64,000 nt of DNA from the NCBI GenBank assembly GCA_002269645.1, contig NIVC01000202.1, positions 496,001-560,000 of the forward strand, in the 5' to 3' direction. The position numbers were made by a program, and so were the translations under genes. Under the pieces are notes generated by a model, which saw only the letters and a list, made by a program, of their open reading frames with translations, was not told the DNA's origin and made no database searches. This DNA comes from Macrostomum lignano. Its lineage: Eukaryota. This document shows, piece after piece, positions 7,441 through 60,980 of the stretch (position 1 is the first letter of the stretch; every line of letters begins with the position of its first letter).

Positions 7441-8964
7441 TCAGCGCTCAGCTCTCGGCCGCCGCGGTTTAGCTGCGTCCGTCCGCCTGCGGTTCTTCCT
7501 CCTCCGGCCGCCGCCACCTTTGCGCCGATTCCTGCGCGCCTGCCGACGTCTAGCCGCGTCGCCGCTGTCGGTCTTCAGGCCCAGAAGCGACGCGCCGCCG
7601 CTGCAGAGGCTGCCGCCGCTGTCCCGGCGCTTCCGTCTGTCCCGGCGGATGCTGCGCAGAGCCCGGCGAAATGTCGGCTGGCGATTGTTCCACTCCGTCA
7701 TGAACTTCACGTCCAGGGCGTCGCCGCCAGCCGCCAGCGAGCCCATCAGCAGGTAGCGCCGCTTGGGATGGGCCGCGGCCGCTTCAAGCAGCGGGCAGTC
7801 CGCGGCCAGCGTGCAGTTGGCGATTTTGCCACCGCCGGCCAGCCGAAGCGAAACGCCACGGCTCCCGCTTTTTCGACGTCGGCCTCCGACATTCCGGCGT
7901 CTCTGCCGTTGACGCTGCCGCTTGCGCCGCGGCCTCGGCGGTTCTTCAGCAGACGACGACTCCAGCTGGCGAGGCACCGAGAAAAATCTCAGCCGGCCTT
8001 TGAATTGAAACTGTCGGCCAGCCGCTCCGGTGGTCACGTGATCGATGCGCGCTTTCAGCACTGTGGAATTGTAGAGGAATCGTGTAGTGACTAAGCAGAT
8101 TTTACAGAGCAAAGGGGCATCGAAATTAATTGTTTTAACCCCATACATTCTTTATGATTGGGCAACGATACTCACCAATATCGTTCATGCAGTAGCCGCT
8201 GACCAAAGACTCATAGCTGGGCTCTTGAACGCACGCCTGGCACTGGGCTGTGGAGATTTTCGGAGTCAGTTTATAATCAGATAACCCACTTAATGCGCAC
8301 CTGGCCCACCACTTCTGTAAGAATGTTAATAAAACTCACCTGATCGTACAGCCACATCAGTTTCTGAAATCGGATGTCATTAAGAGAGATTTTACAAACA
8401 AATTGGTCTATGTTAACAACTGTCCTTCGTCAGACTTTGTGGGAACTCACGCGTAGCGGACCGCTTGATGCACATGAGATTGTTCTCCGGCGGGAACTGA
8501 GTACAGTTGAGCATGTCAGGCCAGCCGAAGCCGAACTTCTCCATAATGGCCAGGCAGGAGGACTTCACAGACTCGCATAGGCTCCGGCAGGGCTGGATGC
8601 TCTTCTCTAATAAGTGCTCAATGCACACCGGAGCGTAGATTGAGCACAGCAGCACTCGGATCTCCGGATGGCAGTTAGTATTCACCAGAGCCTGCCAATG
8701 CTTAGTCTGCTCCTCAACCTCCTTGGCGCTCTCGTGGTTCAGCATGTTCGGCAGGCGCATCTCCGGGTAGCCGATGCCGTAGCACAGCCCCATAGTGCTG
8801 GGGATCGGCCAGCAGCGATGACTGCCGGGCACCGCCGAGCCCCAGGAGGCCGCTCCGGGCTGCGGCAGATTCCATTCTGGAGGAAGCGCCGCGACGTAAG
8901 ACGCCGCAACGATGACAATGACCGCCAGGCGGCCAACAGAAAAGAGCAGCGGCAGGCGGAGCAT
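7441..8964 (-). CDS. sFRP: Secreted frizzled-related protein (sFRP1/2/5-like), 3 exons, 401 aa
   Basis: Exons 8964-8451, 8247-8176, 8060-7441 (1206 nt, in phase, GT-AG). Signal peptide; Frizzled CRD (CWPIP...LCYGIGY..MRLPNML.HES..EV...CHP..R.LLCS.YAPVC...PCRSLCESV..SC...M..FGF.WP.ML.C..FP); NTR domain (CQAC...YC...VLKARIDHV...CPLL...YLLMG...TEW...FRRALR). No 7TM region. Confidence 0.93.
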
Positions 8965-10130
8965 TTTGCAATTGAGGCTGCTTCAGCTCCTCCCTCTTGT
9001 TGCGCGCCAAGCCAAGTCTGGCTCCTATATTCCAGTCTTCCTCCGCGCGGGGGGATGCTGTCTTGTCAGGCAGACGGGGAGAGGGACGACTGAAATTGAT
9101 GAACGGCGAGGCGCTGGGCGAGGCACGCAGAGAAACAGGAGTGGAGGTTGTTGTTTGACGGCGATGCGCGTCTGTGTGTGGGAAAAATTTTGTTGCGGTC
9201 GGCGAGATCAAAGGTGGGGCTCCGCCTTTTTAAATACCGAACCGCCGCCGCCGCCGCCGTATCGACCCAGTTACAGACCAATGCCGGCTTGTCTGCCACT
9301 AGCAAAGATGAAGTGCGGGCGTACAGCGAAGAAGAGGGAGAGAGTGGCGCAAGGCGAGGCTGCAAATCCTAGTCTATAATATTTTTATTCTTCTTTTTAT
9401 CCATTCCGCTTATGATTCATCATCAATCAGTGGCAGGGATGGGCTGGAAAGAGGAATGTCAGGCTCATCCCCCCCCCCCCCCTGTTCAGCCAGCAAGCAA
9501 TGGATCTGTGGATCTGCTGCGGTAGACAATCCCAGACGGGCAGCTGGAAACCGCAGCACTGGCTTGCCCCAAGTCTATTCCTAGCTGTAGTGGAGCGAAT
9601 TCCATGGCAGCAAAGGGCGGCAAAAAACCACAGCAGAATCAACATTGCGTGCCGCTTCATCACCGCCGATGCTGGACTATCGCATTTATGAATTATGAAA
9701 ATAAAATAGCAGAATCCGGCACAGAGTTAGCTAAACTTGAAGCAACTGCATCATGTGCGCAGTTGGCCATTCAGTTCACATTTTTTCTGCCGGGCCGTCG
9801 TTTGGAGGAGAGCGGAAGGAACAACCCTTTCATGAGAGCGAAAATGCAAGCTTCATCATAGGAATGGCAGCGTCCATAGCTCTCGATTAATGTGCTAAAT
9901 ATATGTACCACAAGTTCTAGTCATTTATATTCTTTCCAGCTATAATGTACTGAAGCTCGCAAAGTTTTTCGCAACCCTGACGACGGTTAATTTTAAGTCA
10001 TTATCTTAGCCACAGATATTAATATAGGCCTAAAGGTCCTTCAAGCCGATGATGAACAAGAGAAGTCTATTGGAGTCAATACTCAATCAAAATCTCTACC
10101 AGCTATGCTTTTAAATTTAAATTCTATAAA

Positions 10131-12027
10131 GCGTACAAGCTACGGACAGCTGCACATGACACACACGAGAGCGTACAAGCTACGGACAGCTGCACATGAC
10201 ACACACGAGAGCGTACAAGCTACGGACAGCTGCACATGACACACACGAGAGCGTACAAGCTACGGACAGCTGCACATGACACACACGAGAGCGTACAAGC
10301 TACGGACAGCTGCACATGACACACACGAGAGCGTACAAGCTACGGACAGCTGCACATGACACACACGAGAGCGTACAAGCTACGGACAGCTGCACATGAC
10401 ACACACGAGAGCGTACAAGCCACGGACAGCTGCACATGATGCACACGAGAGCGTACAAGCTACGGACAGCTGCACATGATGCACACGAGAGCGTACAAGC
10501 TACGGACAGCTGCACATGATGCACACGAGAGCGTACAAGCTACGGACAGCTGCACATGATGCACACGAGAGCGTACAAGCCACGAACAGCTGCACATGAT
10601 GCACACGAGAGCGTACAAGCCACGGACAGCTGCAAATGATGCACACGAGAGCGTACAAGCTACGGACAGCTGCACATGATGCACACGAGAGCGTACAAGC
10701 CACGAACAGCTGCACATGATGCACACGAGAGCGTACAAGCTACGGACAGCTGCACATGATGCACACGAGAGCGTACAAGCCACGGACAGCTGCAAATGAT
10801 GCACACGAGAGCGAACAAGCCACGGACAGCTGCAAATGATGCACACGAGAGCGTACAAGCTACGGACAGCTGCACATGATGCACACGAGAGCGTACAAGC
10901 TACGGACAGCTGCACATGATGCACACGAGAGCGTACAAGCTACGGACAGCTGCACATGATGCACACGAGAGCATACAAGCCACGAACAGCTGCACATGAT
11001 GCACACGAGAGCGTACAAGCCAAGGACAGCTGCAAATGATGCACACGAGAGCGTACAAGCTACGGACAGCTGCACATGATGCACACGAGAGCGTACAAGC
11101 TACGGACAGCTGCACATGATGCACACGAGAGCGTACAAGCCACGGACAGCTGCACATGATACACACGAGAGCGTACAAGCTACGGACAGCTGCACATGAC
11201 ACACACGAGAGCGTACAAGCTACGGACAGCTGCACATGACACACACGAGAGCGTACAAGCTACGGACAGCTGCACATGACACACACGAGAGCGTACAAGC
11301 TACGGACAGCTGCACATGACACACACGAGAGCGTACAAGCTACGGACAGCTGCACATGACACACACGAGAGCGTACAAGCTACGGACAGCTGCACATGAT
11401 GCACACGAGAGCGTACAAGCTACGGACAGCTGCACATGATGCACACGAGAGCGTACAAGCTACGGACAGCTGCACATGATGCACACGAGAGCGTACAAGC
11501 TACGGACAGCTGCACATGACACACACGAGAGCGTACAAGCTACGGACAGCTGCACATGACACACACGAGAGCGTACAAGCTACGGACAGCTGCACATGAC
11601 ACACACGAGAGCGTACAAGCTACGGACAGCTGCACATGATGCACACGAGAGCGTACAAGCTACGGACAGCTGCACATGATGCACACGAGAGCGTACAAGC
11701 TACGGACAGCTGCACATGATGCACACGAGAGCGTACAAGCTACGGACAGCTGCACATGATGCACACGAGAGCGTACAAGCCACGGACAGCTGCACATGAT
11801 GCACACGAGAGCGAACAAGCCACGGACAGCTGCACATGAGACACACGAGAGCGAACAAGCCACGGACAGCTGCACATGAGACACACGAGAGCATACAAGC
11901 CACGGACAGCTGCACATGATGCACACGAGAGCGAACAAGCCACGGACAGCTGCACATGAGACACACGAGAGCGAACAAGCCACGGACAGCTGCACATGAG
12001 ACACACGAGAGCGTACAAGCCACGGAC
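10131..12027. repeat. 40-bp minisatellite (GCGTACAAGCTACGGACAGCTGCACATGACACACACGAGA)n
   Basis: About 47 tandem copies with a few recurrent variants. Confidence 0.97.
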
Positions 12028-12145
12028 AAGTATGTTAGAGACGAGAATGCTCGCACATGTTGCAGATGAGTGCGTACACCAAAAATGAATATATATTTCT
12101 ATCCATAAGGTGTGCAGTTATTTTTCACAAGCAACCGTGTACCAG

Positions 12146-13309
12146 TCAGCTGCACCAGTCAGGGCAACCAGACGGCGATAGCAGAGCGGCCGCCAGAGCG
12201 TTAGCAAAATTGTGACAGTTGTTGCACAACAAGGTATAATTGCCATGCACCTGCTTGTAGCTCTGGGCGCAACGTCGGGCGCAGGCTAAACCACCAGGCG
12301 CGTCGGGTCTGGCGCCGGCGCCAAGACTGCGCAGAATACCGTTAGAGCATCGGTCGGAGGCGAACGGCCGGTCGTGCACCATCACGGAGCTTGATTGACT
12401 GTCGCCGATGAATTCGAATACAAGATTGGCGTAGCGGATCCAGCTGTGCCGGAACGGGTTCCAAGGGAAGGCGTACCAGTGCTGGTGAAAGATCCAGCAT
12501 TTGTTGGCGCCAATGGATGACGGGCGTTGCGTGATGCTGTTGCCAAGGCAACTTGCTGGCCAGGTGCCGCCTAGAAAGACATTGTTGTCATCTGGTCCAA
12601 CCTGAGCAGAGGAGTGAGAAGATTAGCTGAAGATTAGCCTATTAGCTGAGTATAGGGGAGTGAGTAGATCAATGAGTTGAGTAAAGGAGAGTGAGCAGAT
12701 CAATCAGTTGAGTATAGGAGAGTGAGCAGATCAATCAGTTGAGTATAGGAGAGTGAGCAGATCAATCAGTTGGGTATAAGAGTGAGTAGATCAATCAGTT
12801 GAGTATAGGAGAGTGAGTAGATCAATCAGTTGAGTATAGGAGAGTGAGTAGATCAATCAGTTGGGTATAGGAGAGTGAGTAGATCAATCAGCTATTAGAA
12901 TAGGAGAGAGTAGATCAATCAGCTATTAGAATAGGAGAGTGAGTAGATCAATCAGCTATTAGAATAGGAGAGTGAGTAGATCAATCAGCTATTAGAATAG
13001 GAGAGTGAGCAGATCAATCAGCTATTAGTATAGGAGAGTGAGCAGATCAATCAGCTATTAGAATAGGAGAGTGAGTAGATCAATCAGCTATTAGAATAGG
13101 AGAGTGAGCAGATCAATCAGCTATTATAATAGGAGAGTGAGTAGATCATGACTAAAGTAGGGCAATAACGTGAGCAAATAAGCAAAAAATTGAAGCAACC
13201 GAAGCAATGTTTCACCAACCAGTAAACCTTGTTCAAGCGACAGGCCAGCCGAGGCAACAGCTGACAAAATGATTAGTGTTGGAACTGAGAGCTGACTCAG
13301 AATTGCCAT
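12146..13309 (-). CDS. Secreted permuted papain-like (PPPDE/DeSI/LRAT-type) protein, 2 exons, ~181 aa
   Basis: Exon 1 13309-13220 (MAILSQLSVPTLIILSAVASAGLSLEQGLL, donor GTTGGT). Exon 2 12601-12146 (acceptor ctgctcag) is open throughout and contains FRHSWIRYANLVFEF and YTLLCNNCHNFANALAAAL, i.e. His before NNC as in permuted NlpC/P60 hydrolases. Exon 1 donor choice is inferred from phase. Confidence 0.65.
12655..13147. repeat. Intronic 31/33-bp minisatellite (GAGTATAGGAGAGTGAGTAGATCAATCAGTT then GCTATTAGAATAGGAGAGTGAGTAGATCAATCA)
   Basis: Tandem units fill the intron of the PPPDE-like gene. Confidence 0.9.
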
Positions 13310-13469: not shown

Positions 13470-13720
13470 TATTTCAGGTTAGGGTAAAGTGTTAAGACTC
13501 ACAACTAAAAGGTCGGGGGTTCGATTCACGATCCACTCGGAACTATTTGTGTCCTTGAGCAGAACACTTAACTCTGCATTGCTTCAGCTCACCCAGCTGT
13601 AAAATGGGTGCCAGCATTAGCTGGGGTAATTGAGGCTGTGTGTGGCGACCCCCCCAGTCCTTGGACTGAACAGCCGTACGCAGCCCATTAAGGCAGGTGA
13701 AATCAATTATTATTATTATT
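13470..13720 (+). mobile_element. tRNA-derived SINE, copy 1
   Basis: B-box GGTTCGATTC, central GTGTCCTTGAGCAGAACACTT, (ATT)n tail. Homologous to copies at 21855-22112 and 62375-62545. Confidence 0.8.
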
Positions 13721-14929: not shown

Positions 14930-17900
14930 CTACGCTTTGCTCAGCTTCTCAAAAATATTTCCACTTGACTGTCGTTCTGACGCCAGAGGCGGATCTTTTC
15001 TACAAGGCGAAGCTGCTTCTTCCTCCTCGCCATTTTCATCAGCGTCGACATCCGTGTCGGCCATCGGTGGCGGTGTCGGCGTCGGTTCGCCATTGCCGTC
15101 GTCATCGTCCGGGTCGGCATCTGGATCCGCCTCCATAGGCGTATTCGCGTCATCGAATGCCTCCGTTGCTGCGCAATTATTTGCGTCCACATCCGGTTCC
15201 ACTTGCGGGTCCGCATCCGGTTCCACTTCTGAGTCCGCATCCGGTTCCACTTCCAGGTCAGCATCCGCTTCCGCATCCAGTTCCACTTCCGGGTCCGCAC
15301 CCACCTGCTTATGATTATAGATATTTTCTTCCAGCAAAGCACTCTTCCGGGCACAAGAGCTCGCGGAGACCGAACCGTCTTGACTTTCTGAACCGTTCAT
15401 ATCAACCCGATGCTTGCTCACTTCGTCGGCAACATCATCGTCTTCGTCTGACGAAGACGGACAATCGGCAACCAGACTGTTGAACATCGGATCGCGCAGG
15501 CCCGCGCGAAGTTGTCGCCGAATGGTCTCGGCCACTCGCAGCGCCCTGGCCGGCAGCTGTCGGAGTGCGCGAGTCGCTTCGGCAACAGCCTGCTCAGCAG
15601 CCAACGAATTAGTCGAGTCCGCCGTGGCGATGCCGTCGGCATCCGTTCGCCTACGTCGCCGACGTCGAGCCACTTGACGCCGCTGCTGGGTCGGGGCGGG
15701 CGCCGATGATCCCAAATCGATCAGCGTTGCCGCGGCCGCCTCGCCGTCGCCAGCGGCTGTAGCCAGCAGGCCACCGTCGCGCAACTCCCGGCCCAGACGC
15801 CGGTAGTCGCCGTCTGTGAGGCAGATCTCGCTGGGATCGAGGCAGCCGGGTGCCAACGGCTGAGCAGCTGGCGACTCGTCCAGCTGTGGAGCATCTTCGA
15901 ACTGGTCAGCGGCAGCGGGCTTGGACGGCCTCTGCGAGTCTCGCTGCTGTTCAGCTGGCTGAAGCAGCGACCGGAGCAGCTGTTGATTCTCGTAGAACGA
16001 CGGGCCGATGTGAGCGTCGGTCAGGAGGCGCCAGTCCTCCGGCTGCAGTCGGCGCAGTGATTTATTCTTGCGAGTCGGCTTCAACTGAAAAGCGGAGATT
16101 CGCTCCCCAGTTGACAATAAAGATCGTTTCAATTTCTCGCGCCGGACAATCAGATAGCAGAGATTGCGCACGCGTTCCATGTCGTGGCGCAGGCACACGA
16201 ACATCTGGGCTCGCTCCTGCAGCCGGCGCTCCTCCGTGTTCACCGGCCGCAGAGACTGGTCGTCTGGCTGCTCCATCAGTGGCCGGCATCCGTTGGCCTG
16301 TTGAGCAAAAAAGCAACGGTTTAAACTGAGCCACAGGACACTCACTGGCAGGTTAATTGTAAACGAGGACTGAAAGCACCTACCGTTCTCTTCAGCTTCC
16401 AGTAGTCCAGCAGAAGCGACAAGGCGAGCGCGTCAACCTTGACGGGAGCCATCTTAGCGATGAGCTCCTCTTTGCTGAACAGGGTATAGAAATTCGCCTC
16501 CAGCTCTTTCAACCTGCGGGAGGGTTGGGTTGACTTTTAATCTTATTGTCTCGACTCGACTCGAGAAATGAGTTTTTCTGTTTGTCTGTGTGTCAGTCTG
16601 TCTCTCTGTCAGTTTCTTAGTGTCTTAGTGTTTTTCCGTCTGTCTTAGTGTCTGCCTGTCTCTCTGTCTTAGTGTCTGCCTGTCTCTCTGTCTTAGTGTC
16701 TGCCTGTCTCTCTGTCTTAGTGTCTGAGTGTCTCTCTGTCTTAGTGTCTGCCTGTCTCTCTGTCTTAGTGTCTGCCTGTCTCTCTGTCTTAGTGTCTGCC
16801 TGTCTCTCTGTCTTAGTGTCTGCCTGTCTCTCTGTCTTAGTGTCTGAGTGTCTCTCTGTCTTAGTGTCTGCCTGTCTCTCTGTCTTAGTGTCTCTCTGTC
16901 TTAGTGTCTTAGTGTCTGTCAGTCTCTCTGTCATAGTGTCCTAGTGTCTGCCTGTCTCTCTGTCTTAGTGTCTTAGTGTCTGCCTGTCTCTCTGTCTTAG
17001 TGTCTTAGTGTCTGCCTGTCTCTCTGTCTTAGTGTCTTAGTGTCTGCCTGTCTCTCTGTCTTAGTGTCTTAGTGTCTGCCTGTCTCTCTGTCTTAGTGTC
17101 TTAGTGTCTGCCTGTCTCTCTGTCTTAGTGTCTTAGTGTCTGCCTGTCTCTCTGTCTTAGTCTTTTTCCGTCTGTCTGTCTTAGTGTCTGCCTGTCTCTC
17201 TGTCTTAGTCTTTTTCCGTCTGTCTGTCTTAGTGTCTGCCTGTCTCTCTGTCTTAGTGTCTTAGTGTCTCTCTGTCTTAGTGACTGTCTGCCTGTCTGTC
17301 TTAGTGTCTCTTTGTCTGCCTACCTGTCTGTTTTTCCGTTCTTAAATATTTCCAAACAAATCTATCTAAAATCAATTATTAACAATCTACCAAGTCCCTA
17401 TTTGTAAATCAAATTGTCCAAAAACCTTACAGCTGATTTCGCTGATTCTCCTGACCGTCCGGATCGTCGCCAGGATCAGCAGCGGTGGCGGCGGCTCTCA
17501 CAGCAGCTGCCAGAGGGTCATCTTCAACCTGAGCCTCCTTGGCTTCCGAATCCGGCCGAGGCTGCAGCTCGGACTCGAAGCCACCATCCTCGCTAGGCAG
17601 CTCGGGTTTCAGCTCAGCAGCGCCATCTCCGTCAGGAGTCTCAGATTTGACCGCAGTCGACGAATCGATGGCATCTTCAAACATGACGTCTTCATCAAGC
17701 CGCGGCCGCTTCGCATCCAGCAGCGAATCCTGGCTGGCGTCCGGGTCCGCCTCCGCTTCCGCGTCTTCGTCCGCGACTTCCGCCGCAAGCTTTGCCCGGG
17801 CGGCTGATGGCGGCCGGCCTCGCTTCCGACCGCGGCCCCGGCCTCGGCCAGCCCCGGCTGCGCCGCCAGCACCACCGCCGCCGCCTCCGCTAACGCCTTT

Positions 17901-20573
17901 GTACTTCGGCCTGGCTTTGGTAGGCGAGCTGTGCGGAGTGACGCCCGTCTGCCTAAACTTGTCACCGTGCCGCTCGCAGTAGGCCAGGTTGCGGACGTCA
18001 CCGCCTGATAACACCTGAGTTATGGATGCAGGGATGTAGAGGCTGGTTTCTGAGTGCTTGGGATAAAAGCTGGCTATGGGATAACTGACTTGGGATTTGG
18101 CTAAGGGATAACTGACTTGGGATTTGGCTAAGGGATAACTGACTTGGGATTTGACTATGGGATAACTGATTTGGGATTTGGCTATGGGATAACTGATTTG
18201 GGATTTGGTTATGAGATAACTGATTTGGGATTCGGCTATGGAATAACTGATTTGGGATTTGGCTATGGAATAACTGGTTTGGGATTTGGCTATGGAATAA
18301 CTGATTTGGGATTTGGCTATGGAATAACTGGTTTGGGATTTGGCTATGGAATAACTGATTTGGGATTTGGCTATGGAATAACTGATTTGGGATTTGGTTA
18401 TGAGATAACTGATTTTGGATTTGGCTATGGGATAAATGATTTGGGATTCGGCTATGGAATAACTGATTTGGGATTTGGTTATGAGATAACTGATTTTGGA
18501 TTTGGCTATGGGATAACTGATTTGGGATTTGAGTATTGGATAACTGATTTGGGATTTGGTTATGAGATAACTGATTTTGGATTTGGCTATAGGTTAACTG
18601 ATTTGGGATATATTAGTCAATGGGATTTCTAGTTTTGAATCAAGCAAGAGCACAATCGGGATAAAAGCAACTGTTCACCTGTCTCATGACCAGCTTGTGC
18701 CTGAAAGCGCAGGTAACGTGAAAAGCCACTTTGCACTGCTTCACGCAGCACTGAATGCAGGCACCGACTTTCTCGCGGCACAGCCGGCACACCAGATTCC
18801 ATCTGCCAGTTGGAATCTCATTCAGCCTAGTGATTGGCTCCATTCGCTCAGGATCGGCAAATCCAACCTCTGGGATCCACAGGGCGCAGGACACGTGACA
18901 CCAGGTGGCGCCGTCTCTCGTAGATTTCATAGCGCCGCCGCTGCTTGAGCACAGGGCGCAGATTGGTCGGACGCCCAGGCTGCAGGGCCGGCACAGCCAG
19001 CTGCCGCTGGGCACCGAGGCCACACCGTAGCAGGCCTGGTGCACCGGGGTGTCGCAACCGTCGCAGAATAGAATCTCGTTGTCCTCTTCGACTTCGAGCG
19101 ACTGGCAGACGCTACAAGGCACCGTGGTGTCGTACTCGATGCCCAGGCCGGCCACGGTGCGGAGACGGTCCAGCATGCGCTCGTGCGCCAGTGATTCCGC
19201 GGCGGTGAACACGGCTTCCAGACTGTCCAGCGACACCGAAGCCAAGCCGGACGTCGCGTCGATCCAGCGTCGGTCGAGCTCGTCGGAGCAGTAGAGCCGG
19301 CACCGGGGCTCCGGTTCCCCTGGTCGAATAGCGACAGGCCCGGTGGAGGTCTCCTGGGTGTCCGGGTCAAACGTGTAGTCGTCAAGGCTGGTAAGCAACT
19401 TCTTCGGCAGGCGCCACTTGGGCGTCGGCGTCAATTCGACGTCCACGCTGTCGCATTCGACTAAGCAGTCGTCGGCTTCCAGATAGCGGACAGACGGCTT
19501 TGGTTGCTCCTGCCTGGCGAGGACGGGCACCTGAACTCCGCGCTGCCATTCGTGACGCCAGGGATCTGACACCTGGGGATCGAGGCCGGATACTATGCAC
19601 TTCTGTGTTTTAGGGGTAGCTAGGAGTGGGATGGCCGCTTGGTGGGGTAGCTAGGAGTGGGATGGCCGCTTGGTGGGGTAGCTAGGAGTGGGATGGCCGC
19701 TTGGTGGGGTAGCTAGGAGTGGGATGGCCGCTTGGTGGGGTAGCTAGGAGTGGGATAGCCGCTTTGTGGGGTAGCTAGGAGTGGGATGGCCGCTTGGTGG
19801 GGTAGCTAGGAGTGGGATGGCCGCTTGGTGGGGTAGCTAGGAGTGGGATGGCCGCTTGGTGGGGTAGCTAGGAGTGGGATGGCCGGCTGGTGGGGTAGCT
19901 AGGAGTGGGATAGCCGCTTTGTGGGGTAGCTAGGAGTGGGATGGCCGCTTGGTGGGGTAGCTAGGAGTGGGATGGCCGGCTGGTGGGGTAGCTAGGAGTG
20001 GGATAGCCGCTTGGTGGGGTAGCTAGGAGTGGGATGGCCGCTTGGTGGGGTAGCTAGGAGTGGGATAGCCGCTTTGTGGGGTAGCTAGGAGTGGGATGGC
20101 CGCTTGGTGGGGTAGCTAGGAGTGGGATGGCCGGCTGGTGGGGTAGCTAGGAGTGGGATAGCCGCTTGGTGGGGTAGCTAGGAGTGGGATGGCCGCTTGG
20201 TGGGGTAGCTAGGAGTGGGATGGCCGCTTTTCAAGGTGGCTTGACTAGAAATAAGATAGTAGCCTTAATATTAGTACTTAAAAAACAGAAATGATTGTGG
20301 GAACTCTGCCCAAGTCTTCATCCAGATACAGTAAGGGGTGGCCACAATACATCATATATCATTAGTAAAGCAAACCTTTAACGGCCGCTTAGTAGGCAGC
20401 TGCTCAATGTCGGCCACCTTCATCCGGCTCACGTAAGCTGCATCGAAGCATTCGGCCACCGAGGATTGGCTCTCAGTGTCGAATTCGCGCCAACGGCGCA
20501 GGCGCGCCTGCCATAAAGCCAGTTGGCGCTCCCCGCTAGCGCCAGTTGGACTGCCTCTGGCGTTATTGTTCAT
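14930..20573 (-). CDS. JADE: JADE-family (PHF15/16/17) PZP-domain chromatin protein, 5 exons, ~1057 aa
   Basis: Exons 20573-20376, 19572-18679, 18014-17431, 16513-16384, 16297-14930 (3174 nt, phases consistent). EPL motifs (VSRMKVADIEQL; DPWRHEWQRGVQVP); PHD-Zn knuckle-PHD (IEYD...CSVC...FCDGC...VHQACYG...WLC...WCHVSCALWIPEVGF...CIQC...AFHVTCAF...YCERH); then DYWKLKR..N..RPL and LRHDMERVRNLCYLIVRREKLK. No bromodomain or PWWP, so JADE rather than BRPF. Confidence 0.92.
16590..17320. repeat. Intronic 24-bp minisatellite (GTCTTAGTGTCTGCCTGTCTCTCT)n
   Basis: Tandem units in JADE intron 3. Confidence 0.93.
18075..18610. repeat. Intronic 27-bp minisatellite (GGATAACTGATTTGGGATTTGGCTATG)n
   Basis: Tandem units in JADE intron 2. 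Confidence 0.93.
19612..20228. repeat. Intronic 31-bp G-rich minisatellite (GGGGTAGCTAGGAGTGGGATGGCCGCTTGGT)n
   Basis: About 20 tandem units in JADE intron 1. Confidence 0.95.
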
Positions 20574-29583: not shown

Positions 29584-30476
29584 CTTGCTGATTATTAATG
29601 TTTGTATCTGTAATTCAAATAGGGATCAGTATTCTTAATTTACTTAGTTTTTTCCTCCTTATTTAACTAAAAATCGTTTGTATTGAAACATATTTTATCT
29701 TAATAATGCTAAAGACGCTGAATTCTGATAATTCTAAAACAATATAAATTAAAAAGATGTTAATATAAACTTTGGTTCGCAAAGTTATGGCAAATAACAA
29801 TTATGGTTTATAAACAAATTAACAATTGAGGATTGAGTTGAGACGAGTTTTAAACATTTAGTTCAAGTTGAGTTGAGTCCTAAAATGCATATTGAAGCAT
29901 TAAAAAAGCACTAGGGTCTACCATTTTTAACCCCTACCAATTACTGAGATATTGCTGATATTACAAAGTTCATAGGGGGAATCGCTAAAATTTAATGACT
30001 TAAGACTTACAAAGAATTGCTCAGATGCAATAGTTCATGGTTCATAGGGGAATTGCTAAGATGTAAAGGCTTATAAAAGGCTTTAATGCTAAAATGCTAA
30101 AGCATTGTTTATAAAATTACTTAGCACACTAACATGCAGAGGCTTAGATGTCTGCATTAAAAGAAACAGAAGACTAGCTTTGCTTAGTACTTGTAAATAT
30201 TTGCATCTTGTCTAGAGTACTTTTATATTCTTCTCTTATTACAACTATATTTAGGAATTAAGTGGCTTATATACTACTTAAAAATATATTATATACAAAT
30301 ATTTATAAGTACTACTACTTGCCAAAAAGCAAATAGGTTTTTGCAAATGAAAAATGTTGCAAATCCAAAGGCCAAAGCAATAATATAAAATCAAAACAAA
30401 TCACAAGGCAAAGGTGACCATAGAATTTTTGTATATGACAAATCTGACTGCTTATAAGTTATATCTTTTACATTTA

Positions 30477-31176
30477 CTACCTTACTACATCCAAAAAGTT
30501 CTTAGACACCACTCCTATCTCAGCATCTGTTCAAACGATTTTTATAAAAATTTACACAAACATTGGCTTATATGTCATGAATTCAATGCTTCAGTTTCAG
30601 CTTAATCAGGTTGACAGAGCAAAAGCAATCAATCATTTACTGAGGAACCTACAAAATTAGCAATACAATTTTGAAGAGCATTGAATCTGGACTCCAGTGG
30701 TGACATTGCAGCTCATTTTTATAAAAATTAATCAGCAAAATATCACTGCTTTTTATGAATATTGATTAAACCCTAGTTGTTTTAATACTAATGAGGGGCT
30801 GATCAGAGCAATACCTAGGGATATGTGGATTGAGGATGAGGACTGAGGAGTTGCCAATGCAATATGACAAATGCATTCAATTGAATGAAGATTTTAATGA
30901 TTTTCACAACTGGCTTTTGAAGCTCTGGAACTTGTCAGTTTGAACTCTTTGCTCATTAATTTTTACATTTTGTTGAGTTTAAAATTGTATTTCTAATTTT
31001 GTAGGTTCCTCAGTAAATGATTGATTGCTTTTGCTCTGTCAACCTGATTAAGCTGAAACTGAAGCACTGAATTCATGATGTATAAGCCTATGTTTGTGCA
31101 AATTTTTATAAAAATTGATCAAACAGATGCAGAGATAAGACGGGTGTCTAAGAACTTTTTGGATGCACTAAGGTAG
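30477..31176. mobile_element. Foldback element with ~195-bp inverted arms
   Basis: 30477-~30672 is the reverse complement of ~30982-31176. The inner part of the arms is nearly identical. Confidence 0.75.
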
Positions 31177-32444
31177 ATTTGGATTCTTGTGGTTTTTTCT
31201 TTTCAAAGATAAAAAATAAAATAAGAGGTTTGGACTAGAAGTGTGACAAATATTTGGAATATTTGGAATTAAATTAAATCAACCAAATATTTTGTTTGAA
31301 TCAGAAAATTGATAATCTAAATAACTTGCACTATATAGTTGCTATGATATGGAATGAAGATTTGGAACAAGTCAAGAGTTAAGTATTGATACTATAGCTT
31401 ATAAATGAAAAGGAATTAGGGATAATTGTATTATAAGGAAAGGCAAAAGGATTAGATATGTAACAATTGAGCATATGGTGTTAAGGTTTGAGAAGGCTTT
31501 AGAAGGAATGGAGGACTGAGACATTTGAGTTTAAAGAGTTGAGAGTATTAGGGGTTGTAGGCTTATGGCTCATAAATAAAGGAGGAATTAAGAATAGGAC
31601 AATATATGGCATGTCTTGAAGAAAGGCAGCTTGGTGATTAAGCAGTCTCAATGCTCAGACTTGAGGCTTTAGAAGTGGAGCATTAAGAATCAAGTTTATA
31701 TAACATGGATTTAGGCTTTAGGGCATTGATTTCTACAAACTTGGAAGGATAGAGTTGGCATTTGGACTAGGCACATTTTATTGAGCAAGAAATAAAGATG
31801 CTGGCCTATTGGTTGAGGGCTACTAAAGGGATAATATTCATTAAAATATTTGTATTTAATATTTTTTGTTATTCAAATCAGTTCTATTGGATATTTGAAT
31901 CAAATTGATTTGGTTCAAAAATTTCATTTGATCCATCTCTAATTTGAACTTTGAAACTCATGAAGAACCATTTAAGGCCTTAGAAAATAGTTTAAAAAGA
32001 TCAAAAAGGATTAATTGATAATGATATCTTTCAACATGGTTTTAAGACTAAATGGATAAAAAAGCAATGAGTTCAGTAATATATATTCTAACAATTAACT
32101 TTTAAGTTGAAAAGTTTTAAATACCAAAATAAATTGATACAGTTTTCCTAACTATATTCTTTTGGAAACTAATTACAAGCCCTTTTAGTATAGACCATAC
32201 ATGCCCAATACCCATCCAACCTCAACCTGTCCAAACTAGATAGGTAAAATGGCTGCCAGCAAAGGTAAGTTGCAAAATAAAAAATGCGAAAAATGAAAAA
32301 TTGGGGGAAAAAGAAATAAGAGGAAAAGAAAAATAAAAGAGGAAGGAGAGAGAAGAAAGAGGGAAAGAGGAGAAAAAGAGAAAGAGAAGAAAAGAAAAAA
32401 AGCAAGGAAAAGTCATATACAAAGTTAAAACAAGTTGCAATTGG

Positions 32445-32665
32445 GGGAACTAAGTCACAATTGGAAGGAACTAAGTTGCAATCTTGAGGAACTAGCTTGT
32501 AAGTTGCATTTGAAAGGAACTAAGTTGCAATCGGGAAGAACTAAGTCACAATTGGGAGAAACTAGCTCATAAGTTGCAATAGGGAAGAACAAGTTATAAT
32601 CTTGAGAAAAATTGTAATCAGGAAGAACTAAGTCACAATTGAAAGGAACTAAGTTGCAATTGGGA
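32445..32665. repeat. Degenerate tandem repeat (GAACTAAGTTGCAAT core)
   Basis: About 9 diverged units. Confidence 0.7.
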
Positions 32666-33792
32666 GATTTTGCTGCCTGTCGTCTTCTCTGCTGAGGCTC
32701 TGTAACAAAATGAATAAAAAAAGCAAATTGCACTAAGGAAATTGTGTATTTTGTAGTTCTGAAAAATTTATTAAATGTAATAATGAAATATAATAATTTT
32801 AATACTTTTATTTTATCTTTCACTCTTGACTCAGCTACTTAGATACTACTTTTAATTACTGCTAGTCTACGACTGCAATTGTATTGCAGTCTACAATTCT
32901 GCATAAGTGAATGATAAATCAATCGGGAAAAAGAGTGAAGGCAGGAGAAAGGGAAGAGAAATAAGGTACTTCCATTTTTCTATAAGCACCATATTGCAAT
33001 ATGTATGCTACTCCCCCCCTAGTATTTCAGTATGGTGGCATATAGGTAAGTCGCAAATCTGGACAAAATTAAATCACACTGGACAGGTGAAATTTTGAGG
33101 TTGGGCATGTATGATATAGGCCTATAAATATAGTATATCTTTCTAAACATTTTTAGGCTTTTATTTTTAGTATTTAGGCTTTTATTATCCCTATTGGCAT
33201 TAAAGGCATAGTCATTATTAAGAGATAGGTATAGTATCTAGCATAGATTAGTGGAAGTGCTTATCCTCACAGTCCCATATCAATAATTCCAATTTTATCC
33301 ATACAAATCCATATTGATAATTTCCAGCTTATCTATGTTGATAATTTCCAGCTTATCTTCATAGCAGCTTAATGAAATAGCTACCACCATTCAAGTCTAT
33401 AGGCCATATCAATAATTCTAACTTTATCCACATGGATCCATGTATATAATTTTCAGCTTATCCTTTGGCTAAGATTGTGCAGTTGTTTGTGTTTATTTTT
33501 GTGTACTAACATTAAATCAATATTGTCATTATTATTAGTATTATTAGGCCCTATCGTTATTATTTCATATTGAATTTTGAATTTTGCAAGTCTCATTTGC
33601 CTCAATCTTAGGGTCTGTTTGGTCATTCTAAGCAAAGCCAGCAGCTAAGCAAATATTTAAAATTAACCCTTTTAAGGACAAAAAAGTTTTAACAAAGTAC
33701 TTGATACTATTGGGTATTCAGTAGTCTATTTGGAAAACTAACAATTGTAAAAATATTAGGCCTTAATGGTACTGATGCATATAAATGTATAA

Positions 33793-34238
33793 GGCAGTTG
33801 TTATTTGTCCGGTGACCAGACGAATAGTGATATGGTTATTTGTCAGGTTACTGACTCCTGACCATGCTTTCTTATTCATCCAGTTAATACCGGACAAATA
33901 GACATTTTGTTATTTGTCCGGTTAAATTGATAATGCTAAAATATCTAGTTCATAAAACCCACAAGGGTAAATATTTCTAGACTTCAAAGACTTCTTACTT
34001 GTATCTTGATTATTATATTGTTATACTAGTGTGTCTTATACACCAAATTATGCTGAATTGAATACACTGCTTTGCTTACACTAAAGTAATACAAGAAAAT
34101 ATTAATCAGTATATGAGAAAAGGTCTTAAAAATCTATAATATTCATCACAAAACAAATAAGATATTTGTGTTAGCAATTTAACTTGACAAATTAACAAAA
34201 AGGCTATTCGTCCGGTCACTGGACAAATAACAACTGCC
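33793..34238. mobile_element. MITE with 35-bp TIRs and 8-9 bp TSD (Mutator- or hAT-like)
   Basis: TIR GGCAGTTGTTATTTGTCCGGTGACCAGACGAATAG / CTATTCGTCCGGTCACTGGACAAATAACAACTGCC. Flanks AATGTATAA (33784-33792) and AATGTATAG (34239-34247). Subterminal TTATTTGTCCGG repeats. Confidence 0.8.
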
Positions 34239-34576
34239 AATGTATAGGCCTAAACCAAATGAAATTCTGTGAGTGTAGCACCCACAATTGAACCTAAATT
34301 ATCTAGATAAGCTGAAGCATAGTTTTGCTACATTGTCTGCTGCATATCCCATCTTCTAATCTATCCAATCCAATCTATCCATCCAATCCATCCATCTATC
34401 CATCCATCCAATCCAAATATACTAAATCTCTAATATTTGTTTGTATGCCCATAACACTCTAGAGATTGCAATTCTTGACCGATTTTGATTGCGTTTTCGC
34501 TAAAAGATTCAAAATTGTCTGGAAGGAAGACAGTTAAAATTTCTTGTATCTGCTTCAATGCTGAAGGTCCCCAATT

Positions 34577-34688
34577 AGTTATCCTGAAGATTCCCGCGTT
34601 TAATTATAACCCCCACCCCCCACCACCCTTGAATAGAGGGCGAAATAATTCCGTAAAATAATTAAACGCGGGAATCTTCAGGATTGCC
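34577..34688. mobile_element. Mini inverted-repeat element
   Basis: Perfect 26-bp IR ATCCTGAAGATTCCCGCGTTTAATTA (34581-34606 / 34659-34684). CCCCAATT flanks both sides (34569-34576, 34689-34696). Confidence 0.65.
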
Positions 34689-35544
34689 CCCCAATTAAAT
34701 AAAAACTGTTTTAAATGGGCTTATGTAATGCAAATTTTATCAGCGAGATAAACTTCACAGCCAATTTTAATGATTGCGCCAGAGCCAACTGATAAGAAAA
34801 CTCACTGGGCCCCACTTAAAGGGAGGAGCAATAAAAATTATTCTGGATGCTGGCAACCAGCTCTAATTAGCTGTAGCACTATATTCAGCATCACTAATTT
34901 GCCGATAATATTCATAGAAAAATATTTGTAGATAAACAAAACAGCTTTGACAGTTTTCTTGTTAAGTTGTAAAGTGGTACTTAGAATCCTTAAAAGCTAA
35001 AAATTTAATAACATTTTAAGCAAATTATTTGAAATTTCTAAAATATTAGACAATTAATACCGGTATTAAAATGATACTTTTGTGTCTATTGGGAGGTCAC
35101 TCTCATCTAGAGAATCCCGTCTTTTTTCAAGCGTTTACCCTTCGATTAAATTTGAAGTTGATTATTTTTTCATCAACACAAAAGAACATAGATCGCTGTG
35201 GCTGATCTTCTCTGATGTCAAATCAATGTGCAGTCAAGTACCAACTTGGAATACCGAATACATTTCTTTCAAAATGTTGAAATCTCAGACTGGTTTTCGC
35301 CGAAAAATACACTACGAAGATTAGAAGATAGGCCTATGAGGAACTTTTCACTCTTTTCATATTAAAATTGCAACTGTTTTTATTGGAAGCTCGTCCAAAG
35401 CATTTCTTTTGATATATCTTGCCTAACGTTTAGCTCCAACGAATTTTAAATCACTTTATTAAAAATTGATCTTCATCTTCATGCTATTTTATTTACTATT
35501 ATATATCACAATAAGCCTAAAAGTAAAAAGTAATGTCTTCTGAC

Positions 35545-35938
35545 AAGGAAAATGAATCTGAAAATCAACATAATGTAAGAAACGTCGCGTTTCGCACTCC
35601 TAGGTGCATCTTCAGGTTTATTTTTTCAACAACGAAATTAAACAGGTTTTGCGAATAAATATGTGGAGTTGGTTGTACGTAAACAAGAAAAATAAGAAAA
35701 ATTATTGAACAAATTGATATCAATTATATCAATATTAATTATCAATTATATCGATTTTATATTGATTTGTTCAATAATTTTTCTAATTTTTCTTGTTTAC
35801 CTACAACCAACTCCATATATTTATTCGCAAAACCTGTTTAATTTCGTTGTTGAAAAAATAAACCTGAAGATGCACCTAGGAGTGCGAAATGCATCGTTAC
35901 TAATTTACATTATGTTGATTTTCGGATTCATTTTCCTT
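35545..35938. mobile_element. Long palindromic foldback (~170-bp arms, short AT-rich loop)
   Basis: AAGGAAAATGAATCTGAAAATCAACATAATGTAA... pairs with ...TTACATTATGTTGATTTTCGGATTCATTTTCCTT almost to the centre. Confidence 0.8.
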
Positions 35939-36086
35939 TTACTAGCCTAGCGAGCTACACTAGGCCTACCTATCTTCTGACAAAAACTTGGTTTTTTGGT
36001 TCTGTTCCTTTTCTAATTCACAATACCTTAATTTTTTGTGTTAAAATATTTTACACCAAATTTTGGCAATCCTTGGTTTCCCACTT

Positions 36087-37539: not shown

Positions 37540-40440
37540 TAATTGGGCCTATGTCAGCTGTATAAAGCTCTTCTAAAAAGCCTAGCTGCTAGACTGCTGG
37601 CACTGCTAGCTTCTTCTTCTTCACTTTCAGCACTCGCTATAGCAGCGCGTTGGTGCCAAAATGGGTGGGGACTTACATCCCATGCGTCTCCTCTTGGGCA
37701 TTGGGAGATGATGTGGTCAACTGTGTCCAGATGTCCACAGTCCAGGCAGAGCAGGGAGGTGGCAAGACCAAGATGGCAGTACGTCTCTGTGCTGATCATG
37801 GACATGCTGGCCCAAATCTGGCAGGCCAGGACGTGTTTGGCTCTGTTTCATGCATGGAAGTTGGGCCAGGTGGCGGGCAGGGCATTGTCATCTAGGCAAT
37901 GGCAATCCCTTTGGATGGCTGCCTACGCTGCTGCCAGCAAGATTGGGGCTTGTTCCTGGTCTAGTAGGTGCGCCACGTCAGCGGCGTGGTCCACTGCCTC
38001 GTTAAGATCAATGCCGCAGTGGACCAGGACCCAAGCAAAGTTGACGGTGGTCGTCTTACAGAGTTTGATAATTTTGCACTAGCATTCCATTCCTGAGCTC
38101 GTCCTTTGGTTGAGGGGGCCAGTTTCTAAGGCAAGGAGCAACAACAGAGAGTTGGAGCAGATGTGGATACGGCTTCCCTTAAGTTCTTGGTTGTTGTTAA
38201 CAAAACGGAGGGCTGTGTGGGCCACCACTTCTGTGTCAAAAAAGCTGCAGAAGCGGCCTTGCGCACGTGGGTGGCCATCACCATGCAGATGATGGCAGCG
38301 CTGCCTCTTGGGCCTGTGCCATTGGCGACCAAGCTGTCAGTCCAAATAGTTACTTTGGCCTCTGGGAGTCCACCAAGGATCTTCTCGGCTGCTTTGTGTC
38401 AGAGTTCTTGGGAGTCGGGTCGGTGGCTCCTAGGTAGAAGGTCGTGCTTCCTCTGCATACTGCAGGATGGTAATGTCTCCTCTACGAAGGTGATCCAGTA
38501 GCTCCACAAATGGAAGCTCCAAGGCTGCGTGTCGCCAGCAGAGTCAGTGCATGCGTGAGGCCTCCTGGTGGTCTAGGTAGTTTGGAGTTTGTAGATCAGT
38601 ATTGTGGTTTCTAAGAAGGGCTTTGTGGGTCCTGTTATTTAGTCATGGTCTCATCTGGTGGGAGGCTGATGCAGTCTCTAGCATGTCGGGCAAAAGGCAA
38701 AGGATCTGTTTACAAAGTCAAGCTGCCGTCTCTGATGCGATGTGGGCCATTGGCTGTAGCTCGGCCAGGCGGAGGACGTGGTGGACATCAGTCGGGAGGA
38801 TATAGCTTGTGATAAGTCTTGTGCAGGCATTCTGTTGTCTCTCAATAGAGTCTTGTACCAACGGCGAGGTTCCGCAAAGCCAGGTGCCTGCCACATAGTT
38901 GGCAACGGCATGGACGGTGCTGATGTATGCTGTCCTCAATGTCTTGTGGTCGGCGCCCATGGTGCAGTTCACAAGGGCCACTAGAAGGTGGCGGCACTCA
39001 GTCATGCAGGCTCTAGTCCTTTTGGCATGCTGTCTAGGTGCATTCCCAGGTAACAAGGTTCATGGTCAAAAGCCAGTTTCTGTCCTTCAATAAGCAGTCG
39101 GACTCATTTTTTACCATTTGTCTTGCGGGGGTCGAGAGTGAAAGTCCTGTAAACGCACGTCTCTGTACTGAGTGTCACCTTCCAGCATTTGCACCATTTG
39201 CTCACAGCATCCAAGGCTGGTTGGATAGTTGCCGCGCAGTTGTCAAGGCTCTTGGCAGTGGCAAGAAGGGTCGAGTTGTCTGTAGAGTTTGATGTTGCAG
39301 TCCTTGGCTGCCTCAGCAACAGTCGCAGCGAGATCATTAATGTAGACAATCCAGAGGATAGGTGCTAGAACGCTGCCTTGGGGGAGTCCTTCTTTGAATA
39401 TGTACTCCCGGCTATAGACTTTGCCAAGGCGTACCCGTGCGTGGCGGTCTGAGAGGAAGCTTTGAATCCAGTGGATGATGTGCAAGTTAACACCAAAGTC
39501 GTGGAGTTTGATATAGAGAGCCGCTTTCCAGATCTTGTCGTATGCGCAACTAAAATCCAGGAGGCAGAGGATAGAGCTGAGGTGTGGGACTGCCTCCAGC
39601 CCATCAAAGATATCCTGGCAGATGCTAGCAATGAGTTCTTCCATTAACCAGCCCTTGCGGAAACCTGCTTGTATGTTGGATAGTCTTCCGGAGTTTTTGA
39701 GGAAGTGCCACAGTCTTTGAAGAGCCATGTACTCTGCCAGCTTGGCTATGCAGCTGGTAAGGGCAACTGGGTGGTAGGAGTCCAGTTTGCTGGGATCCTT
39801 TCCTTTTTTGGTATTGGGATAATCCAAATGCGCTTCCATTGCCATGGGCAGTTGGCATTAGTCCAGGCTTGGTTGATGAGGTCAAGGAGTCTGATGTTAG
39901 TTGACGGGGGAAGATGCTTAATCATCTCATTGGTAATACCGTCTGGGCTAGGGGCTTTGCCAGACTTCAAGGAGCAGACTGCGTGGCGGTACTTGGTGGT
40001 GCTAAAAGTTGAGTAGATGTTGGGTTGGTTTTGTCTGTGGCAGCCGCACTCAGTTCTTAAGATGAGTTTTTTTGTTTATAGGCCCATGCTGTGGTCTTTT
40101 TTGAGTCTTGAGACCGCACTGTATATTTGTCCAAACAGGTTTGCCTTCTCTAGGTTTGTATATGCAGGGCGACTTGGCATGGTGGGTCTCATCTGGGGAT
40201 GGTAGAGAGATGCGCTTCTCTGTTGCTTGGGGCCATCTCTTCTCATACGGCAAAGCAGCTTGAACATGTCGTTGTCGGCATTTAGTTTGCTTGCCTTCTC
40301 CAGCAAGCGGCCTGTTTTTTGCACTTAATGGTGATTTTTGGTAATGGCACTGCTGCTGCTGCTGGACAGCTAACACTGCTAGCTGCTGCAGCTGCTAGAT
40401 AGCTGGCATTGCTAGCTGCTACGGCTGCTAGACAGTTGGT
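37540..40440 (-). mobile_element. Decayed, 5'-truncated non-LTR retrotransposon (I-group/Nimb-like: RT, RNase H, CCHC)
   Basis: KAPSPDGI, SYHPVALTSCIAKL.E, QAGFRKG, LLDFSCAYDKIW, GLPQGSVLAPILWIVYINDL. RNase H IWTD...SAAII and FAWVLVHCGIDLNEAVDHAA; C-terminal CLDCGHLDTVDHIISQCP. Many frameshifts. No endonuclease domain seen. Confidence 0.88.
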
Positions 40441-56838: not shown

Positions 56839-57091
56839 TGTTGTGGCGTGAGTACTAAGTACAAGTATTGAGTACTTCAGTCGTACCGTATTTATGTTTC
56901 AACAGTATTGTATTCAACTCAAATCATTGCGTAACATATAGCCAATCTTCCAGGTGTATACACCCAACGTGCACGCTTCATTGACTAACAAATATAAAGC
57001 GGCGGAGTCAGTCGAGACTCCACAATTCTTATTTCTCAACTCTCGCTCGCACAAAAACCCACGCGTTCAATACACAACACTGGCGACGAAG

Positions 57092-60000: not shown

Positions 60001-60980
60001 CGACCAAGCGTTCCGCCCATGACGATCACCAGCACGCCAGCAGGAGCCTGGGAGGAGCTGCAACTCGATATCTGCGGAGAGTTCAGAGCGGCGCCGCGTC
60101 ACCAGCGATTCGCGATCGTGCTCATCGATCAGTTTAGCCGATGGCCAGAAGTCGCGCTCGTAGAATCGGTCACAACCAAGGTAGTCGTCGACTTCCTCGA
60201 GGTCATCTGGTCGAGGTGGGGCATCCCGAAAAGCATCACAACCGACAATGGACCCCAGTTCGGCCGCGAGTTCGACGAGTACCTGGCGAGCCTGGCGATC
60301 GAACACAAGCGAACGGCAGTGTACTGTCCAGAACAAAACGGCAACGTCGAGCGATTCAACCGCACTCTCGGCGAGGGCGTGACAGCGCACTTGGTCGCCG
60401 GGTGGAGCTTCTGCAAGGCCGTCCGAGCTGTCGTCGCGGCCTATAGGGCGACCCCAACGCACGTCACGGGTTCGAGTCCACACGAGCTCATGACTGGCCG
60501 ACCAATGCGCACCCGCTGCTCGCACTCCAACCGGACTCGGAAGCCAAGCGGCCGACGTCGGCTCATGACCGGGTCGCCACGGCAAAGCAGCGAGCAAAGA
60601 GCGACACCGACCGTCGGCGGCATGCATCGGCGACGCGGACCGCGGTCATCCAAGACGGCTCCTGGGTGCGCATCTCCAAGCCGGTGGCACCTGGCAAGCT
60701 GGAGCCGAAGCTCGCCGGGCCGTTCCGGGTTCGCAAGCGATTCAAGACAACTGTGCTGCTCGAAAACGGCAAGCGGTGGCACCTGCGGCGCTGCGTGCCG
60801 GCCGGACCGGGCAAAGGCAGCGACGACGACGGCGACGCGCAGCTCGACGAAGGTGGCGGCGGCCCGGAGGTGGATCCGCCAGGACCGCCTGATGATCTCG
60901 CTGGGGAACCGCCGGCACCCCTGCCGGTGCTGAGAAGGTCAGAGCGCGAGCGTCGCCCGCCAATGCGCTACCCGAACTGA
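57092..60980 (+). CDS. Gag-Pol polyprotein (Gag with two Cys-His motifs, protease, RT, RNase H, integrase) with two apparent -1 frameshifts
   Basis: CRRCG..HKCPAMGKKCNNCNKPNHFAAVC; LDSGAS; RLCIDLRDVNK; FSKLD...GYLQ; RVPFGL; VDDILV; CDASAHGIGAVL; HEGHHG...WWPGID...C..C; LDICG, DQFSRW, TDNGPQF, GNVERFN. Frame breaks at C runs near 58440 and 60511. Confidence 0.93.

Follow-up and report, generated by a model that had tools for sequence, protein, structure and literature searches.

The window (the whole 64,000-nt stretch of Macrostomum lignano DNA that was analysed) carries a two-exon minus-strand gene whose joined coding sequence of 546 nt encodes a protein of 181 aa with nine Cys (Table 1). The ORF list covers this gene as fragments only (12146..12385, 79 aa; 13124..13309, 61 aa). 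The sequence-only reading had looked past these fragments, joined a frame open from 12601 to a signal-peptide exon, and described a product of about 181 aa with about nine Cys and several named motifs; all of this was reproduced from the sequence. As read from the sequence, the locus is an intact two-exon nuclear animal gene, and its model is right with a predicted junction between the two exons. Most of the intron is a 33-bp tandem array.

Table 1 Coordinates of the gene, of its motifs and of other features in the window.
Feature	Positions	Strand	Remarks
Exon 1 CDS, aa 1-30	13220..13309	-	ATG start; putative signal peptide
Predicted intron, 618 nt, GT...AG	12602..13219	-	Donor and acceptor sequence
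33-bp tandem array in the intron	12649..13148		15.7 copies, 93% matches
Exon 2 CDS, aa 31-181 and TGA	12146..12601	-	Codon usage, GC3, homologues; whole PPPDE-like domain
HSWIRYANLVFEF beta-hairpin	12410..12448	-	His82 codon 12448-12446, Glu93 codon 12415-12413, both invariant
YTLLCNNCHNFANAL motif	12194..12238	-	Tyr152 codon 12238-12236; putative nucleophile Cys159, codon 12217-12215
Span of the two invariant CxxxC pairs	12152..12283	-	C137-x3-C141 on helix 1; C176-P-D-W-C180 at the C-terminus
40-bp tandem array	10130..12028		47.5 copies, 97% matches; starts 118 bp after the gene's stop
SINE-like element	about 13490..13700		Plus-strand tRNA T-arm-like GGTTCGATTC box
Jade-family PHD-finger gene	14930..16345 and 18640..19572	-	Ends 1.6 kb before ATG 13309
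Fz-domain ORF	8413..8964	-	Single exon, hydrophobic leader; PF01392, E=2.4e-30
LTR-retrotransposon pol ORF with upstream ORF	56954..60933	+	RT, RNase H, integrase; upstream 543-aa ORF at 56954..58585
Separate reverse-transcriptase fragment	39243..39845	-	
AT-rich block	30001..36000		GC 0.31-0.32; rest of the window about 0.45-0.60

The ATG at 13309 opens a 30-codon exon 1 with the product MAILSQLSVPTLIILSAVASAGLSLEQGLL, whose last base, at 13220, is directly followed by a GT at 13219-13218 (donor context CTG/GTTGGT, the slash marking the junction). The acceptor AG at 12603-12602 lies behind the pyrimidine-rich TCTCACTCCTCTGCTCAG (acceptor context CTCCTCTGCTCAG/G), and an exon 2 that starts at 12601 is in phase 0 and in frame with exon 1. 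The frame that contains HSWIRY is open from 12622, with a TAA at 12625-12623 just before it, and the gene stops at the TGA at 12148-12146. The first in-frame Met of exon 2, M104, comes only after the conserved His, so the gene must have a further exon upstream. Fifteen candidate first exons running from an ATG to a phase-0 GT were found between the gene and its upstream neighbour; the one at 13309-13220 is the nearest and the sole one of the 15 with an AxA cleavage motif, and it is not the most hydrophobic leader among the candidates listed. A second frame-compatible splice pair, CAAG/GTTTAC (13228/13227) with TTTCTAG/GC (12571/12570), would remove aa 28-43, including the first beta-strand motif. 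The BLASTP alignment with the nearest relative, P0002, starts at D34, three residues into exon 2 and inside the stretch that this pair would delete; we therefore prefer the 13220/12601 junction over 13228/12570, and we infer exon 1 and its splice junction as given in Table 1.

Exon 2 is clearly coding, to judge by its codon usage and GC3, which match those of the neighbouring genes, and by its homologues, which reach E=7e-26. With the eight other coding ORFs of the window as the codon-usage reference, exon 2 has a log-odds of +0.13 when read in the proposed frame, and all five alternatives score below zero. GC3 in exon 2 stands at 0.67 (0.57-0.77 in neighbouring genes), and the proposed frame stays intact over 151 codons, with all of the family-invariant residues present.

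Upstream of the PPPDE-like gene, on the same strand, is the Jade-family gene. Its product shows 44-48% identity to the bee, scorpion and lamprey counterparts without distinction, and no more to any named orthologue except for 66% with the octopus protein over the ePHD part only. The ORF at 8413-8964, downstream of the PPPDE-like gene, probably encodes a secreted Fz-domain protein. On the minus strand, the 40-bp array that follows the gene reads as numerous overlapping, Cys-rich pseudo-ORFs that might pass for genes. The SINE-like element is located between the Jade gene and the PPPDE-like gene; ARAGORN and Rfam returned nothing in or near the locus, this element included. The 543-aa ORF in front of the LTR-retrotransposon pol ORF has no Pfam match.

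HMMER, run exhaustively over 1.84 billion cluster representatives with the predicted protein, gave 40 hits, 38 of them real, with a best E of 7e-26. The remaining two, P0023 (1132 aa) and P0040 (1218 aa), are bacterial repeat proteins that match via low-complexity Cys-rich repeats and were set aside as unrelated. By phmmer, P0001 matches at E=7e-26 and P0002 at 3.3e-16, and BLASTP aligns P0002 over aa 34-180 at E=3e-26. A word-indexed protein search with the full protein gave no match, and the exhaustive HMMER search alone found the family. Neither a paralogue elsewhere in the window (tblastn) nor an exact match to an exon-2 33-mer among metagenome contigs was detected. All named members are from bivalves (Pinctada, Crassostrea/Magallana, Saccostrea, Ostrea, Mytilus, Mizuhopecten, Tegillarca and Mya), and the only names they carry are "uncharacterized", "Secreted protein" or "LRAT/PPPDE domain-containing"; examples are Pinctada fucata A0A194ALC9, Magallana gigas A0A8W8IK98 ('Secreted protein') and Mytilus coruscus A0A6J8AXC4 ('LRAT domain-containing protein'). 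Literature searches on the family, on the locus names of its members and on PPPDE proteins that are secreted turned up nothing relevant. The gene, described earlier as the least explained one in the window, is not an orphan and belongs to a family with 38 cluster representatives. The taxonomic distribution, which had been singled out as informative on horizontal transfer, is patchy, with named members in bivalves only; no bacterial relatives were found.

The relatives are proteins of 140-200 aa with a common plan. A hydrophobic leader is followed by a first strand, PYYFGTTxLxC, and then by a variable linker in which a dibasic site is nearly always present, in many cases as GKR. Next comes the hairpin H[RS]WIYYxGxYFEFG, and the C-terminal part reads C...PAGYSxLSxDCxxxCxxxY....GxYxLLxNNCHxFxN...ILC....CPxWC. 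In the family alignment, no variation is seen at C48, H82, E93, C137, C141, Y145, C159, C176, P177, W179 and C180 (window numbering), and hardly any at C115, Y152 and N158. The window protein carries every invariant residue, and it resembles the bivalve relatives in size, in having a leader, in the invariant His/Glu/Tyr/Cys, in six structural Cys and in the C-terminal CPxWC. By this alignment, the window gene is a member of an uncharacterised Cys-rich PPPDE-like family.

Within this family, the window copy and P0002 form, on their shared sequence features, a divergent sub-branch. Both are without the dibasic site and without the "ILC" cysteine, and both have an extra linker cysteine together with the stretches FEFIGDS and PFAS.RC. 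The window linker, TQRPSSIGANKCWIFHQHWYAFPWNPFR, contains no KR, and the PAGYSxLS motif is absent from the window copy, which has LGAGARPDAPGGLA in its place. Compared with the bivalve relatives, the window copy has the additional Cys65 and Cys156, the latter specific to it, and a first-strand motif that reads NVFLGG, a degenerate form of PYYFGT. Because the sub-branch has lost the dibasic site between strand 1 and the His strand, the window copy would act as a single chain without convertase processing. The GKR sites of the relatives had also raised a reading as a neuropeptide precursor; we did not adopt it for the window copy, in which the site is absent and whose N-terminal strand is modelled as belonging to the fold.

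Several gene arrangements were seen among the relatives. Several predicted bivalve proteins (P0001, P0033, P0037 and P0041) have two or three copies of the domain, and three family members lie on one 63-Mb Pinctada contig, which suggests tandem gene arrays or fused gene models. In Pinctada imbricata (locus L002, 9990-10010), the annotated start of P0008 (MYIIMFS) falls inside a pyrimidine tract ending in CAG, just before the PYYFG-coding stretch; the public P0008 model probably misses an upstream signal-peptide exon. The acceptor-like site at this place was considered as a sign of a conserved intron position, but its phase differs from that in the window gene and it lends no support. In the contig that bears P0002 (L001, 1435-2505), only 3 nt separate the stop codon of a globin exon from the ATG of P0002, which is encoded on that same strand and contains no intron at this place; this arrangement looks operon-like.

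The fold was approached through profiles and a structural model. Against Pfam PF05903, the match of the window protein is confined to aa 151-179, the Cys helix, and its 17.2 bits (E=0.0046) fall short of the gathering threshold of 29.2. The same profile matches 20 of 25 family members at E<0.01 (best E=2.3e-8), and P0007 reaches the gathering score (29.4 vs 29.2 bits). PF04970 gave no hit with the window protein and weak hits in 6 of the 25 relatives (best E 0.0022). When the family profile was run against all PDB sequences, all eight hits were DeSI or PLAAT3/LRAT chains (E=0.25-0.47), and those to DeSI and PLAAT3 fall on the YTLLCNNCHNFANAL motif; phmmer with the single protein had produced one PDB hit, 3e25 (E=0.8), dismissed as chance. 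An hhalign comparison of the 47-sequence family alignment with DeSI, the sequence of which was confirmed to be identical to 3ebq, gave a probability of 68% and E=4.9e-5 over 123 columns, in a register that places H82 on DeSI His38, Y152 on Tyr101 and C159 on Cys108. This alignment reaches the His only in local mode with a relaxed MAC threshold, and the -glob option gave no usable score. Against PLAAT3, the probability was 45% with the His off by one.

The AlphaFold2 model from the 47-sequence alignment has a pLDDT of 79.7 and a pTM of 0.78. Its elements are ordered as beta 1, a disordered linker, the beta-strand with the His, three more strands, an alpha-helix and a second alpha-helix with the Cys; Cys159 is at the N-terminus of this last helix, Tyr152 is seven residues earlier, and the exon-2 residues 52-57 and 60-66 are strands in a hairpin with His82. 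A first run with 20 sequences had reached a pLDDT of 67, and its Foldseek matches were meaningless except for parechovirus 2A (E=1.9). Foldseek with the model returned no significant hit, the best E being 1.2 in the PDB and 0.14 in BFVD. At rank 1 in the PDB is the catalytic domain of PLAAT3 (TM 0.43, normalised by target), with two picornavirus H-NC 2A proteins also listed; the top of the BFVD list consists of polyprotein fragments from picornaviruses (megrivirus, chicken picornavirus, sicinivirus) and from a hypovirus, and annotated PPPDE proteins of giant viruses are at ranks 8 and 14. Individually weak, these lines taken together make it well supported, at the level of profiles and a predicted model, that the protein family belongs to the permuted NlpC/P60 superfamily and is of the PPPDE type. 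The earlier proposal of a PPPDE/LRAT-like fold stands for the His...NC pattern of a permuted papain, of the PPPDE more than the LRAT kind, on the Pfam matches across the family, the hhalign register and the consistent though non-significant top hits of Foldseek; the window protein itself is below the PF05903 threshold and has no PF04970 hit. The comparison of the HHpred/Foldseek kind that accompanied the proposal aligned the His, Tyr and Cys with those of DeSI by hhalign but gave no significant Foldseek hit.

Known systems with this fold resemble the window protein to different degrees. DeSI-1 and DeSI-2 (PPPDE; PF05903, Peptidase_C97; 3ebq, 2wp7) have the same permuted order, with the His on an N-terminal hairpin and the Cys at the start of a C-terminal helix. 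Tyr101 of DeSI precedes Cys108 by seven residues, the spacing of Tyr152 and Cys159; between the His and the FG turn the hairpins are equally long, and the motif Y.L...NC..F.N is present in both. Unlike the window protein, DeSI is cytosolic or nuclear, has no signal peptide and is not disulfide-rich. The window protein has nine Cys with two CxxxC pairs; a long disordered linker connects its strand 1 to the His strand, and its chain stops immediately behind the domain. LRAT/PLAAT (HRASLS) proteins and the picornavirus H-box/NC 2A proteins (PF04970) share an NC.HF-like motif and the permuted topology with the window protein. The LRAT/PLAAT motif is NCEHF, whereas the window protein reads NNCHNF; the second His of the LRAT His-His-Cys triad, about 12 residues on, is absent, and positions +11 and +12 are taken in the family by Glu and Phe (Glu93/Phe94). 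The C-terminal membrane anchor of LRAT/PLAAT is missing as well, the window protein ending in CPDWCS directly after the domain. By these residues, PPPDE is closer than LRAT for the His...NC pattern.

A third comparison bears on where such an enzyme may work. CLN5 is a glycosylated, disulfide-containing PPPDE-like enzyme of the lysosomal lumen with a His-Tyr-Cys centre (PMC9012467), and acts as a lysosomal PPPDE-like thioesterase and BMP synthase (PMC9012467, PMC11568333); the His-Tyr-Cys triad, numbered His38/Tyr101/Cys108 in DeSI, has been described for PPPDE1 and CLN5 (PMC9012467). It is made as a 407-aa precursor and becomes a soluble lysosomal protein, of which residues 99-399 are modelled in the crystal structure. 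CLN5 is thus a precedent for a permuted papain fold that works outside the cytosol, in the secretory/endolysosomal lumen, on acyl (thio)esters as a thioesterase or transacylase, a case overlooked by the statement in the sequence-only reading that such enzymes are normally cytosolic or membrane-bound. Its active-site spacing, Y-x6-C, equals that of the window protein. It differs from the window protein in being larger, with three domains, N-glycosylation and another disulfide pattern, and CLN5 (PF15014) did not appear among Pfam matches of the window protein at E up to 10, among those of family members or in the PDB profile search.

The exon 1 leader has an uncharged n-region, the hydrophobic core VPTLIILSAVASA and an A-S-A/G site typical of signal peptidase, and full-length homologues have hydrophobic N-termini at the same place, one of them being auto-named 'Secreted protein'. 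The earlier description of a Cys-rich protein with a signal-peptide-like start was borne out by the nine Cys, the hydrophobic leader and the ASA/G site. On these features, we infer that the protein is secreted or luminal. The four Cys of the CxxxC pairs (C137, C141, C176 and C180) are invariant in both family alignments checked. In 22 of 27 full domains of the relatives, there are eight Cys with the putative nucleophile included; because this count is even, the putative nucleophile may be disulfide-bonded in most relatives, which is the chief reservation about catalysis.

From these elements, we propose the following mechanism. The signal peptide (aa 1-21) would send the protein into the secretory pathway and be removed after Ala21, and the mature protein of about 160 aa would fold into a small beta-sheet and two helices, a permuted papain (NlpC/P60) arrangement of PPPDE/DeSI type, in which His82 lies in a strand and Cys159 opens the last helix. 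The eight Cys other than Cys159, including the two CxxxC pairs, would probably form four disulfides, leaving Cys159 free; two of these disulfides, if the CxxxC pairs are paired with each other as we suppose, would staple the C-terminal tail to helix 1. Cys159, activated by His82, would attack an ester, thioester or amide carbonyl to give an acyl-enzyme (acyl-thioester), and the acyl group would then be hydrolysed or transferred; a role in orienting His82 may fall to the invariant Glu93 of the adjacent strand. Catalysis by Cys159/His82 is proposed here by analogy, and deacylase or acyltransferase chemistry would be the most likely on account of the analogy with DeSI, CLN5 and PLAAT. The best explanation of the gene, and one we hold to be moderately probable, is a PPPDE-type precursor that yields an extracellular or luminal deacylase or acyltransferase.

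The main competitor is a secreted pseudo-enzyme or structural protein, in which the PPPDE-like scaffold would be kept while all Cys, Cys159 included, serve disulfides or redox locking in a binding, matrix or adhesive role. The even number of eight domain Cys in most relatives, the small size and very high Cys content of the family, and the GKR-type processing sites in many relatives, which are typical of secreted precursors, would all suit such a protein. However, His82, Glu93, Tyr152 and Asn158-Cys159 are invariant or nearly invariant in about 25-47 sequences at ~25-40% identity, a conservation that structure alone can hardly uphold; moreover, the ninth Cys of the window copy means that one can stay free, and the Y-x6-C spacing is that of the DeSI and CLN5 active sites. 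We consider the pseudo-enzyme unlikely, though far from negligible. A toxin, another role that had been suggested for the protein, has nothing that points to it.

It is very unlikely, in our estimate, that the exon-2 domain is real while the model is wrong, owing to another first exon or splice or to an unexpressed or decaying copy. Such an error would be in keeping with the weak GTTGGT donor, the frame-compatible alternative splice (13228/13227 with 12571/12570), the tandem arrays that fill the intron and the 3' flank, and the missing PAGYS motif and KR site, but a frame that is intact across 151 codons with every family-invariant residue kept speaks against it. The resemblance to P0002 sets in at D34, ahead of the alternative acceptor, in a stretch that corresponds to the conserved PYYFG strand of the family and is placed in the sheet by the AlphaFold model, and exon 1 encodes the nearest leader and the only AxA candidate. 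Origin of the gene as a horizontally acquired effector or toxin gene, whether from bacteria, from viruses or between marine animals, is extremely improbable. The distribution is patchy (named members in bivalves only, plus the non-bivalve genome of the window and one further sample) and the best Foldseek matches in BFVD are viral, but the 1.84 billion representatives yielded no sequence relative from bacteria or viruses, and the viral structural matches amount to a non-significant resemblance at the superfamily level. The intron of the gene is of the spliceosomal type, its GC3 and codon usage resemble those of the host, and it sits among ordinary animal genes (Jade, Fz, LSM, SAC3/GANP and an ASC channel). 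The intron, the codon usage and the lack of bacterial relatives thus speak against the horizontal acquisition that had been raised for this gene.

Going beyond the deacylase or acyltransferase reading of the window gene, one might group it with its bivalve relatives into a class, so far unrecognised, of PPPDE-type cysteine deacylases/acyltransferases that are extracellular and stapled by disulfides. Most members would be activated by a proprotein convertase cutting in the loop ahead of the His strand, and they would act on extracellular lipids or acylated proteins; the patchy occurrence, in bivalves and in the unrelated, GC-rich animal lineage of the window, could be due to very fast divergence or to an old transfer between marine animals. 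We regard this wider proposal as distinctly doubtful, and put it forward as speculation.

Permuted papain-fold enzymes such as DeSI, PLAAT/LRAT and CLN5 draw attention as lipid and protein deacylases and acyltransferases. To our knowledge, nearly all known animal members are found in the cytosol, in membranes or in lysosomes. The permuted papain superfamily and the luminal case of CLN5 were known; what is new here is a divergent copy, in the window genome, of an unstudied and otherwise bivalve-named family. For the window itself, the result is a corrected gene model in a place where ORF lists give fragments only. A compact, secreted, disulfide-rich branch, if true, would widen the range of places where permuted-papain chemistry is used, and would offer a small and tractable scaffold for study. 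As the family is expanded in bivalves, a basic activity result would annotate dozens of proteins now called "uncharacterized".
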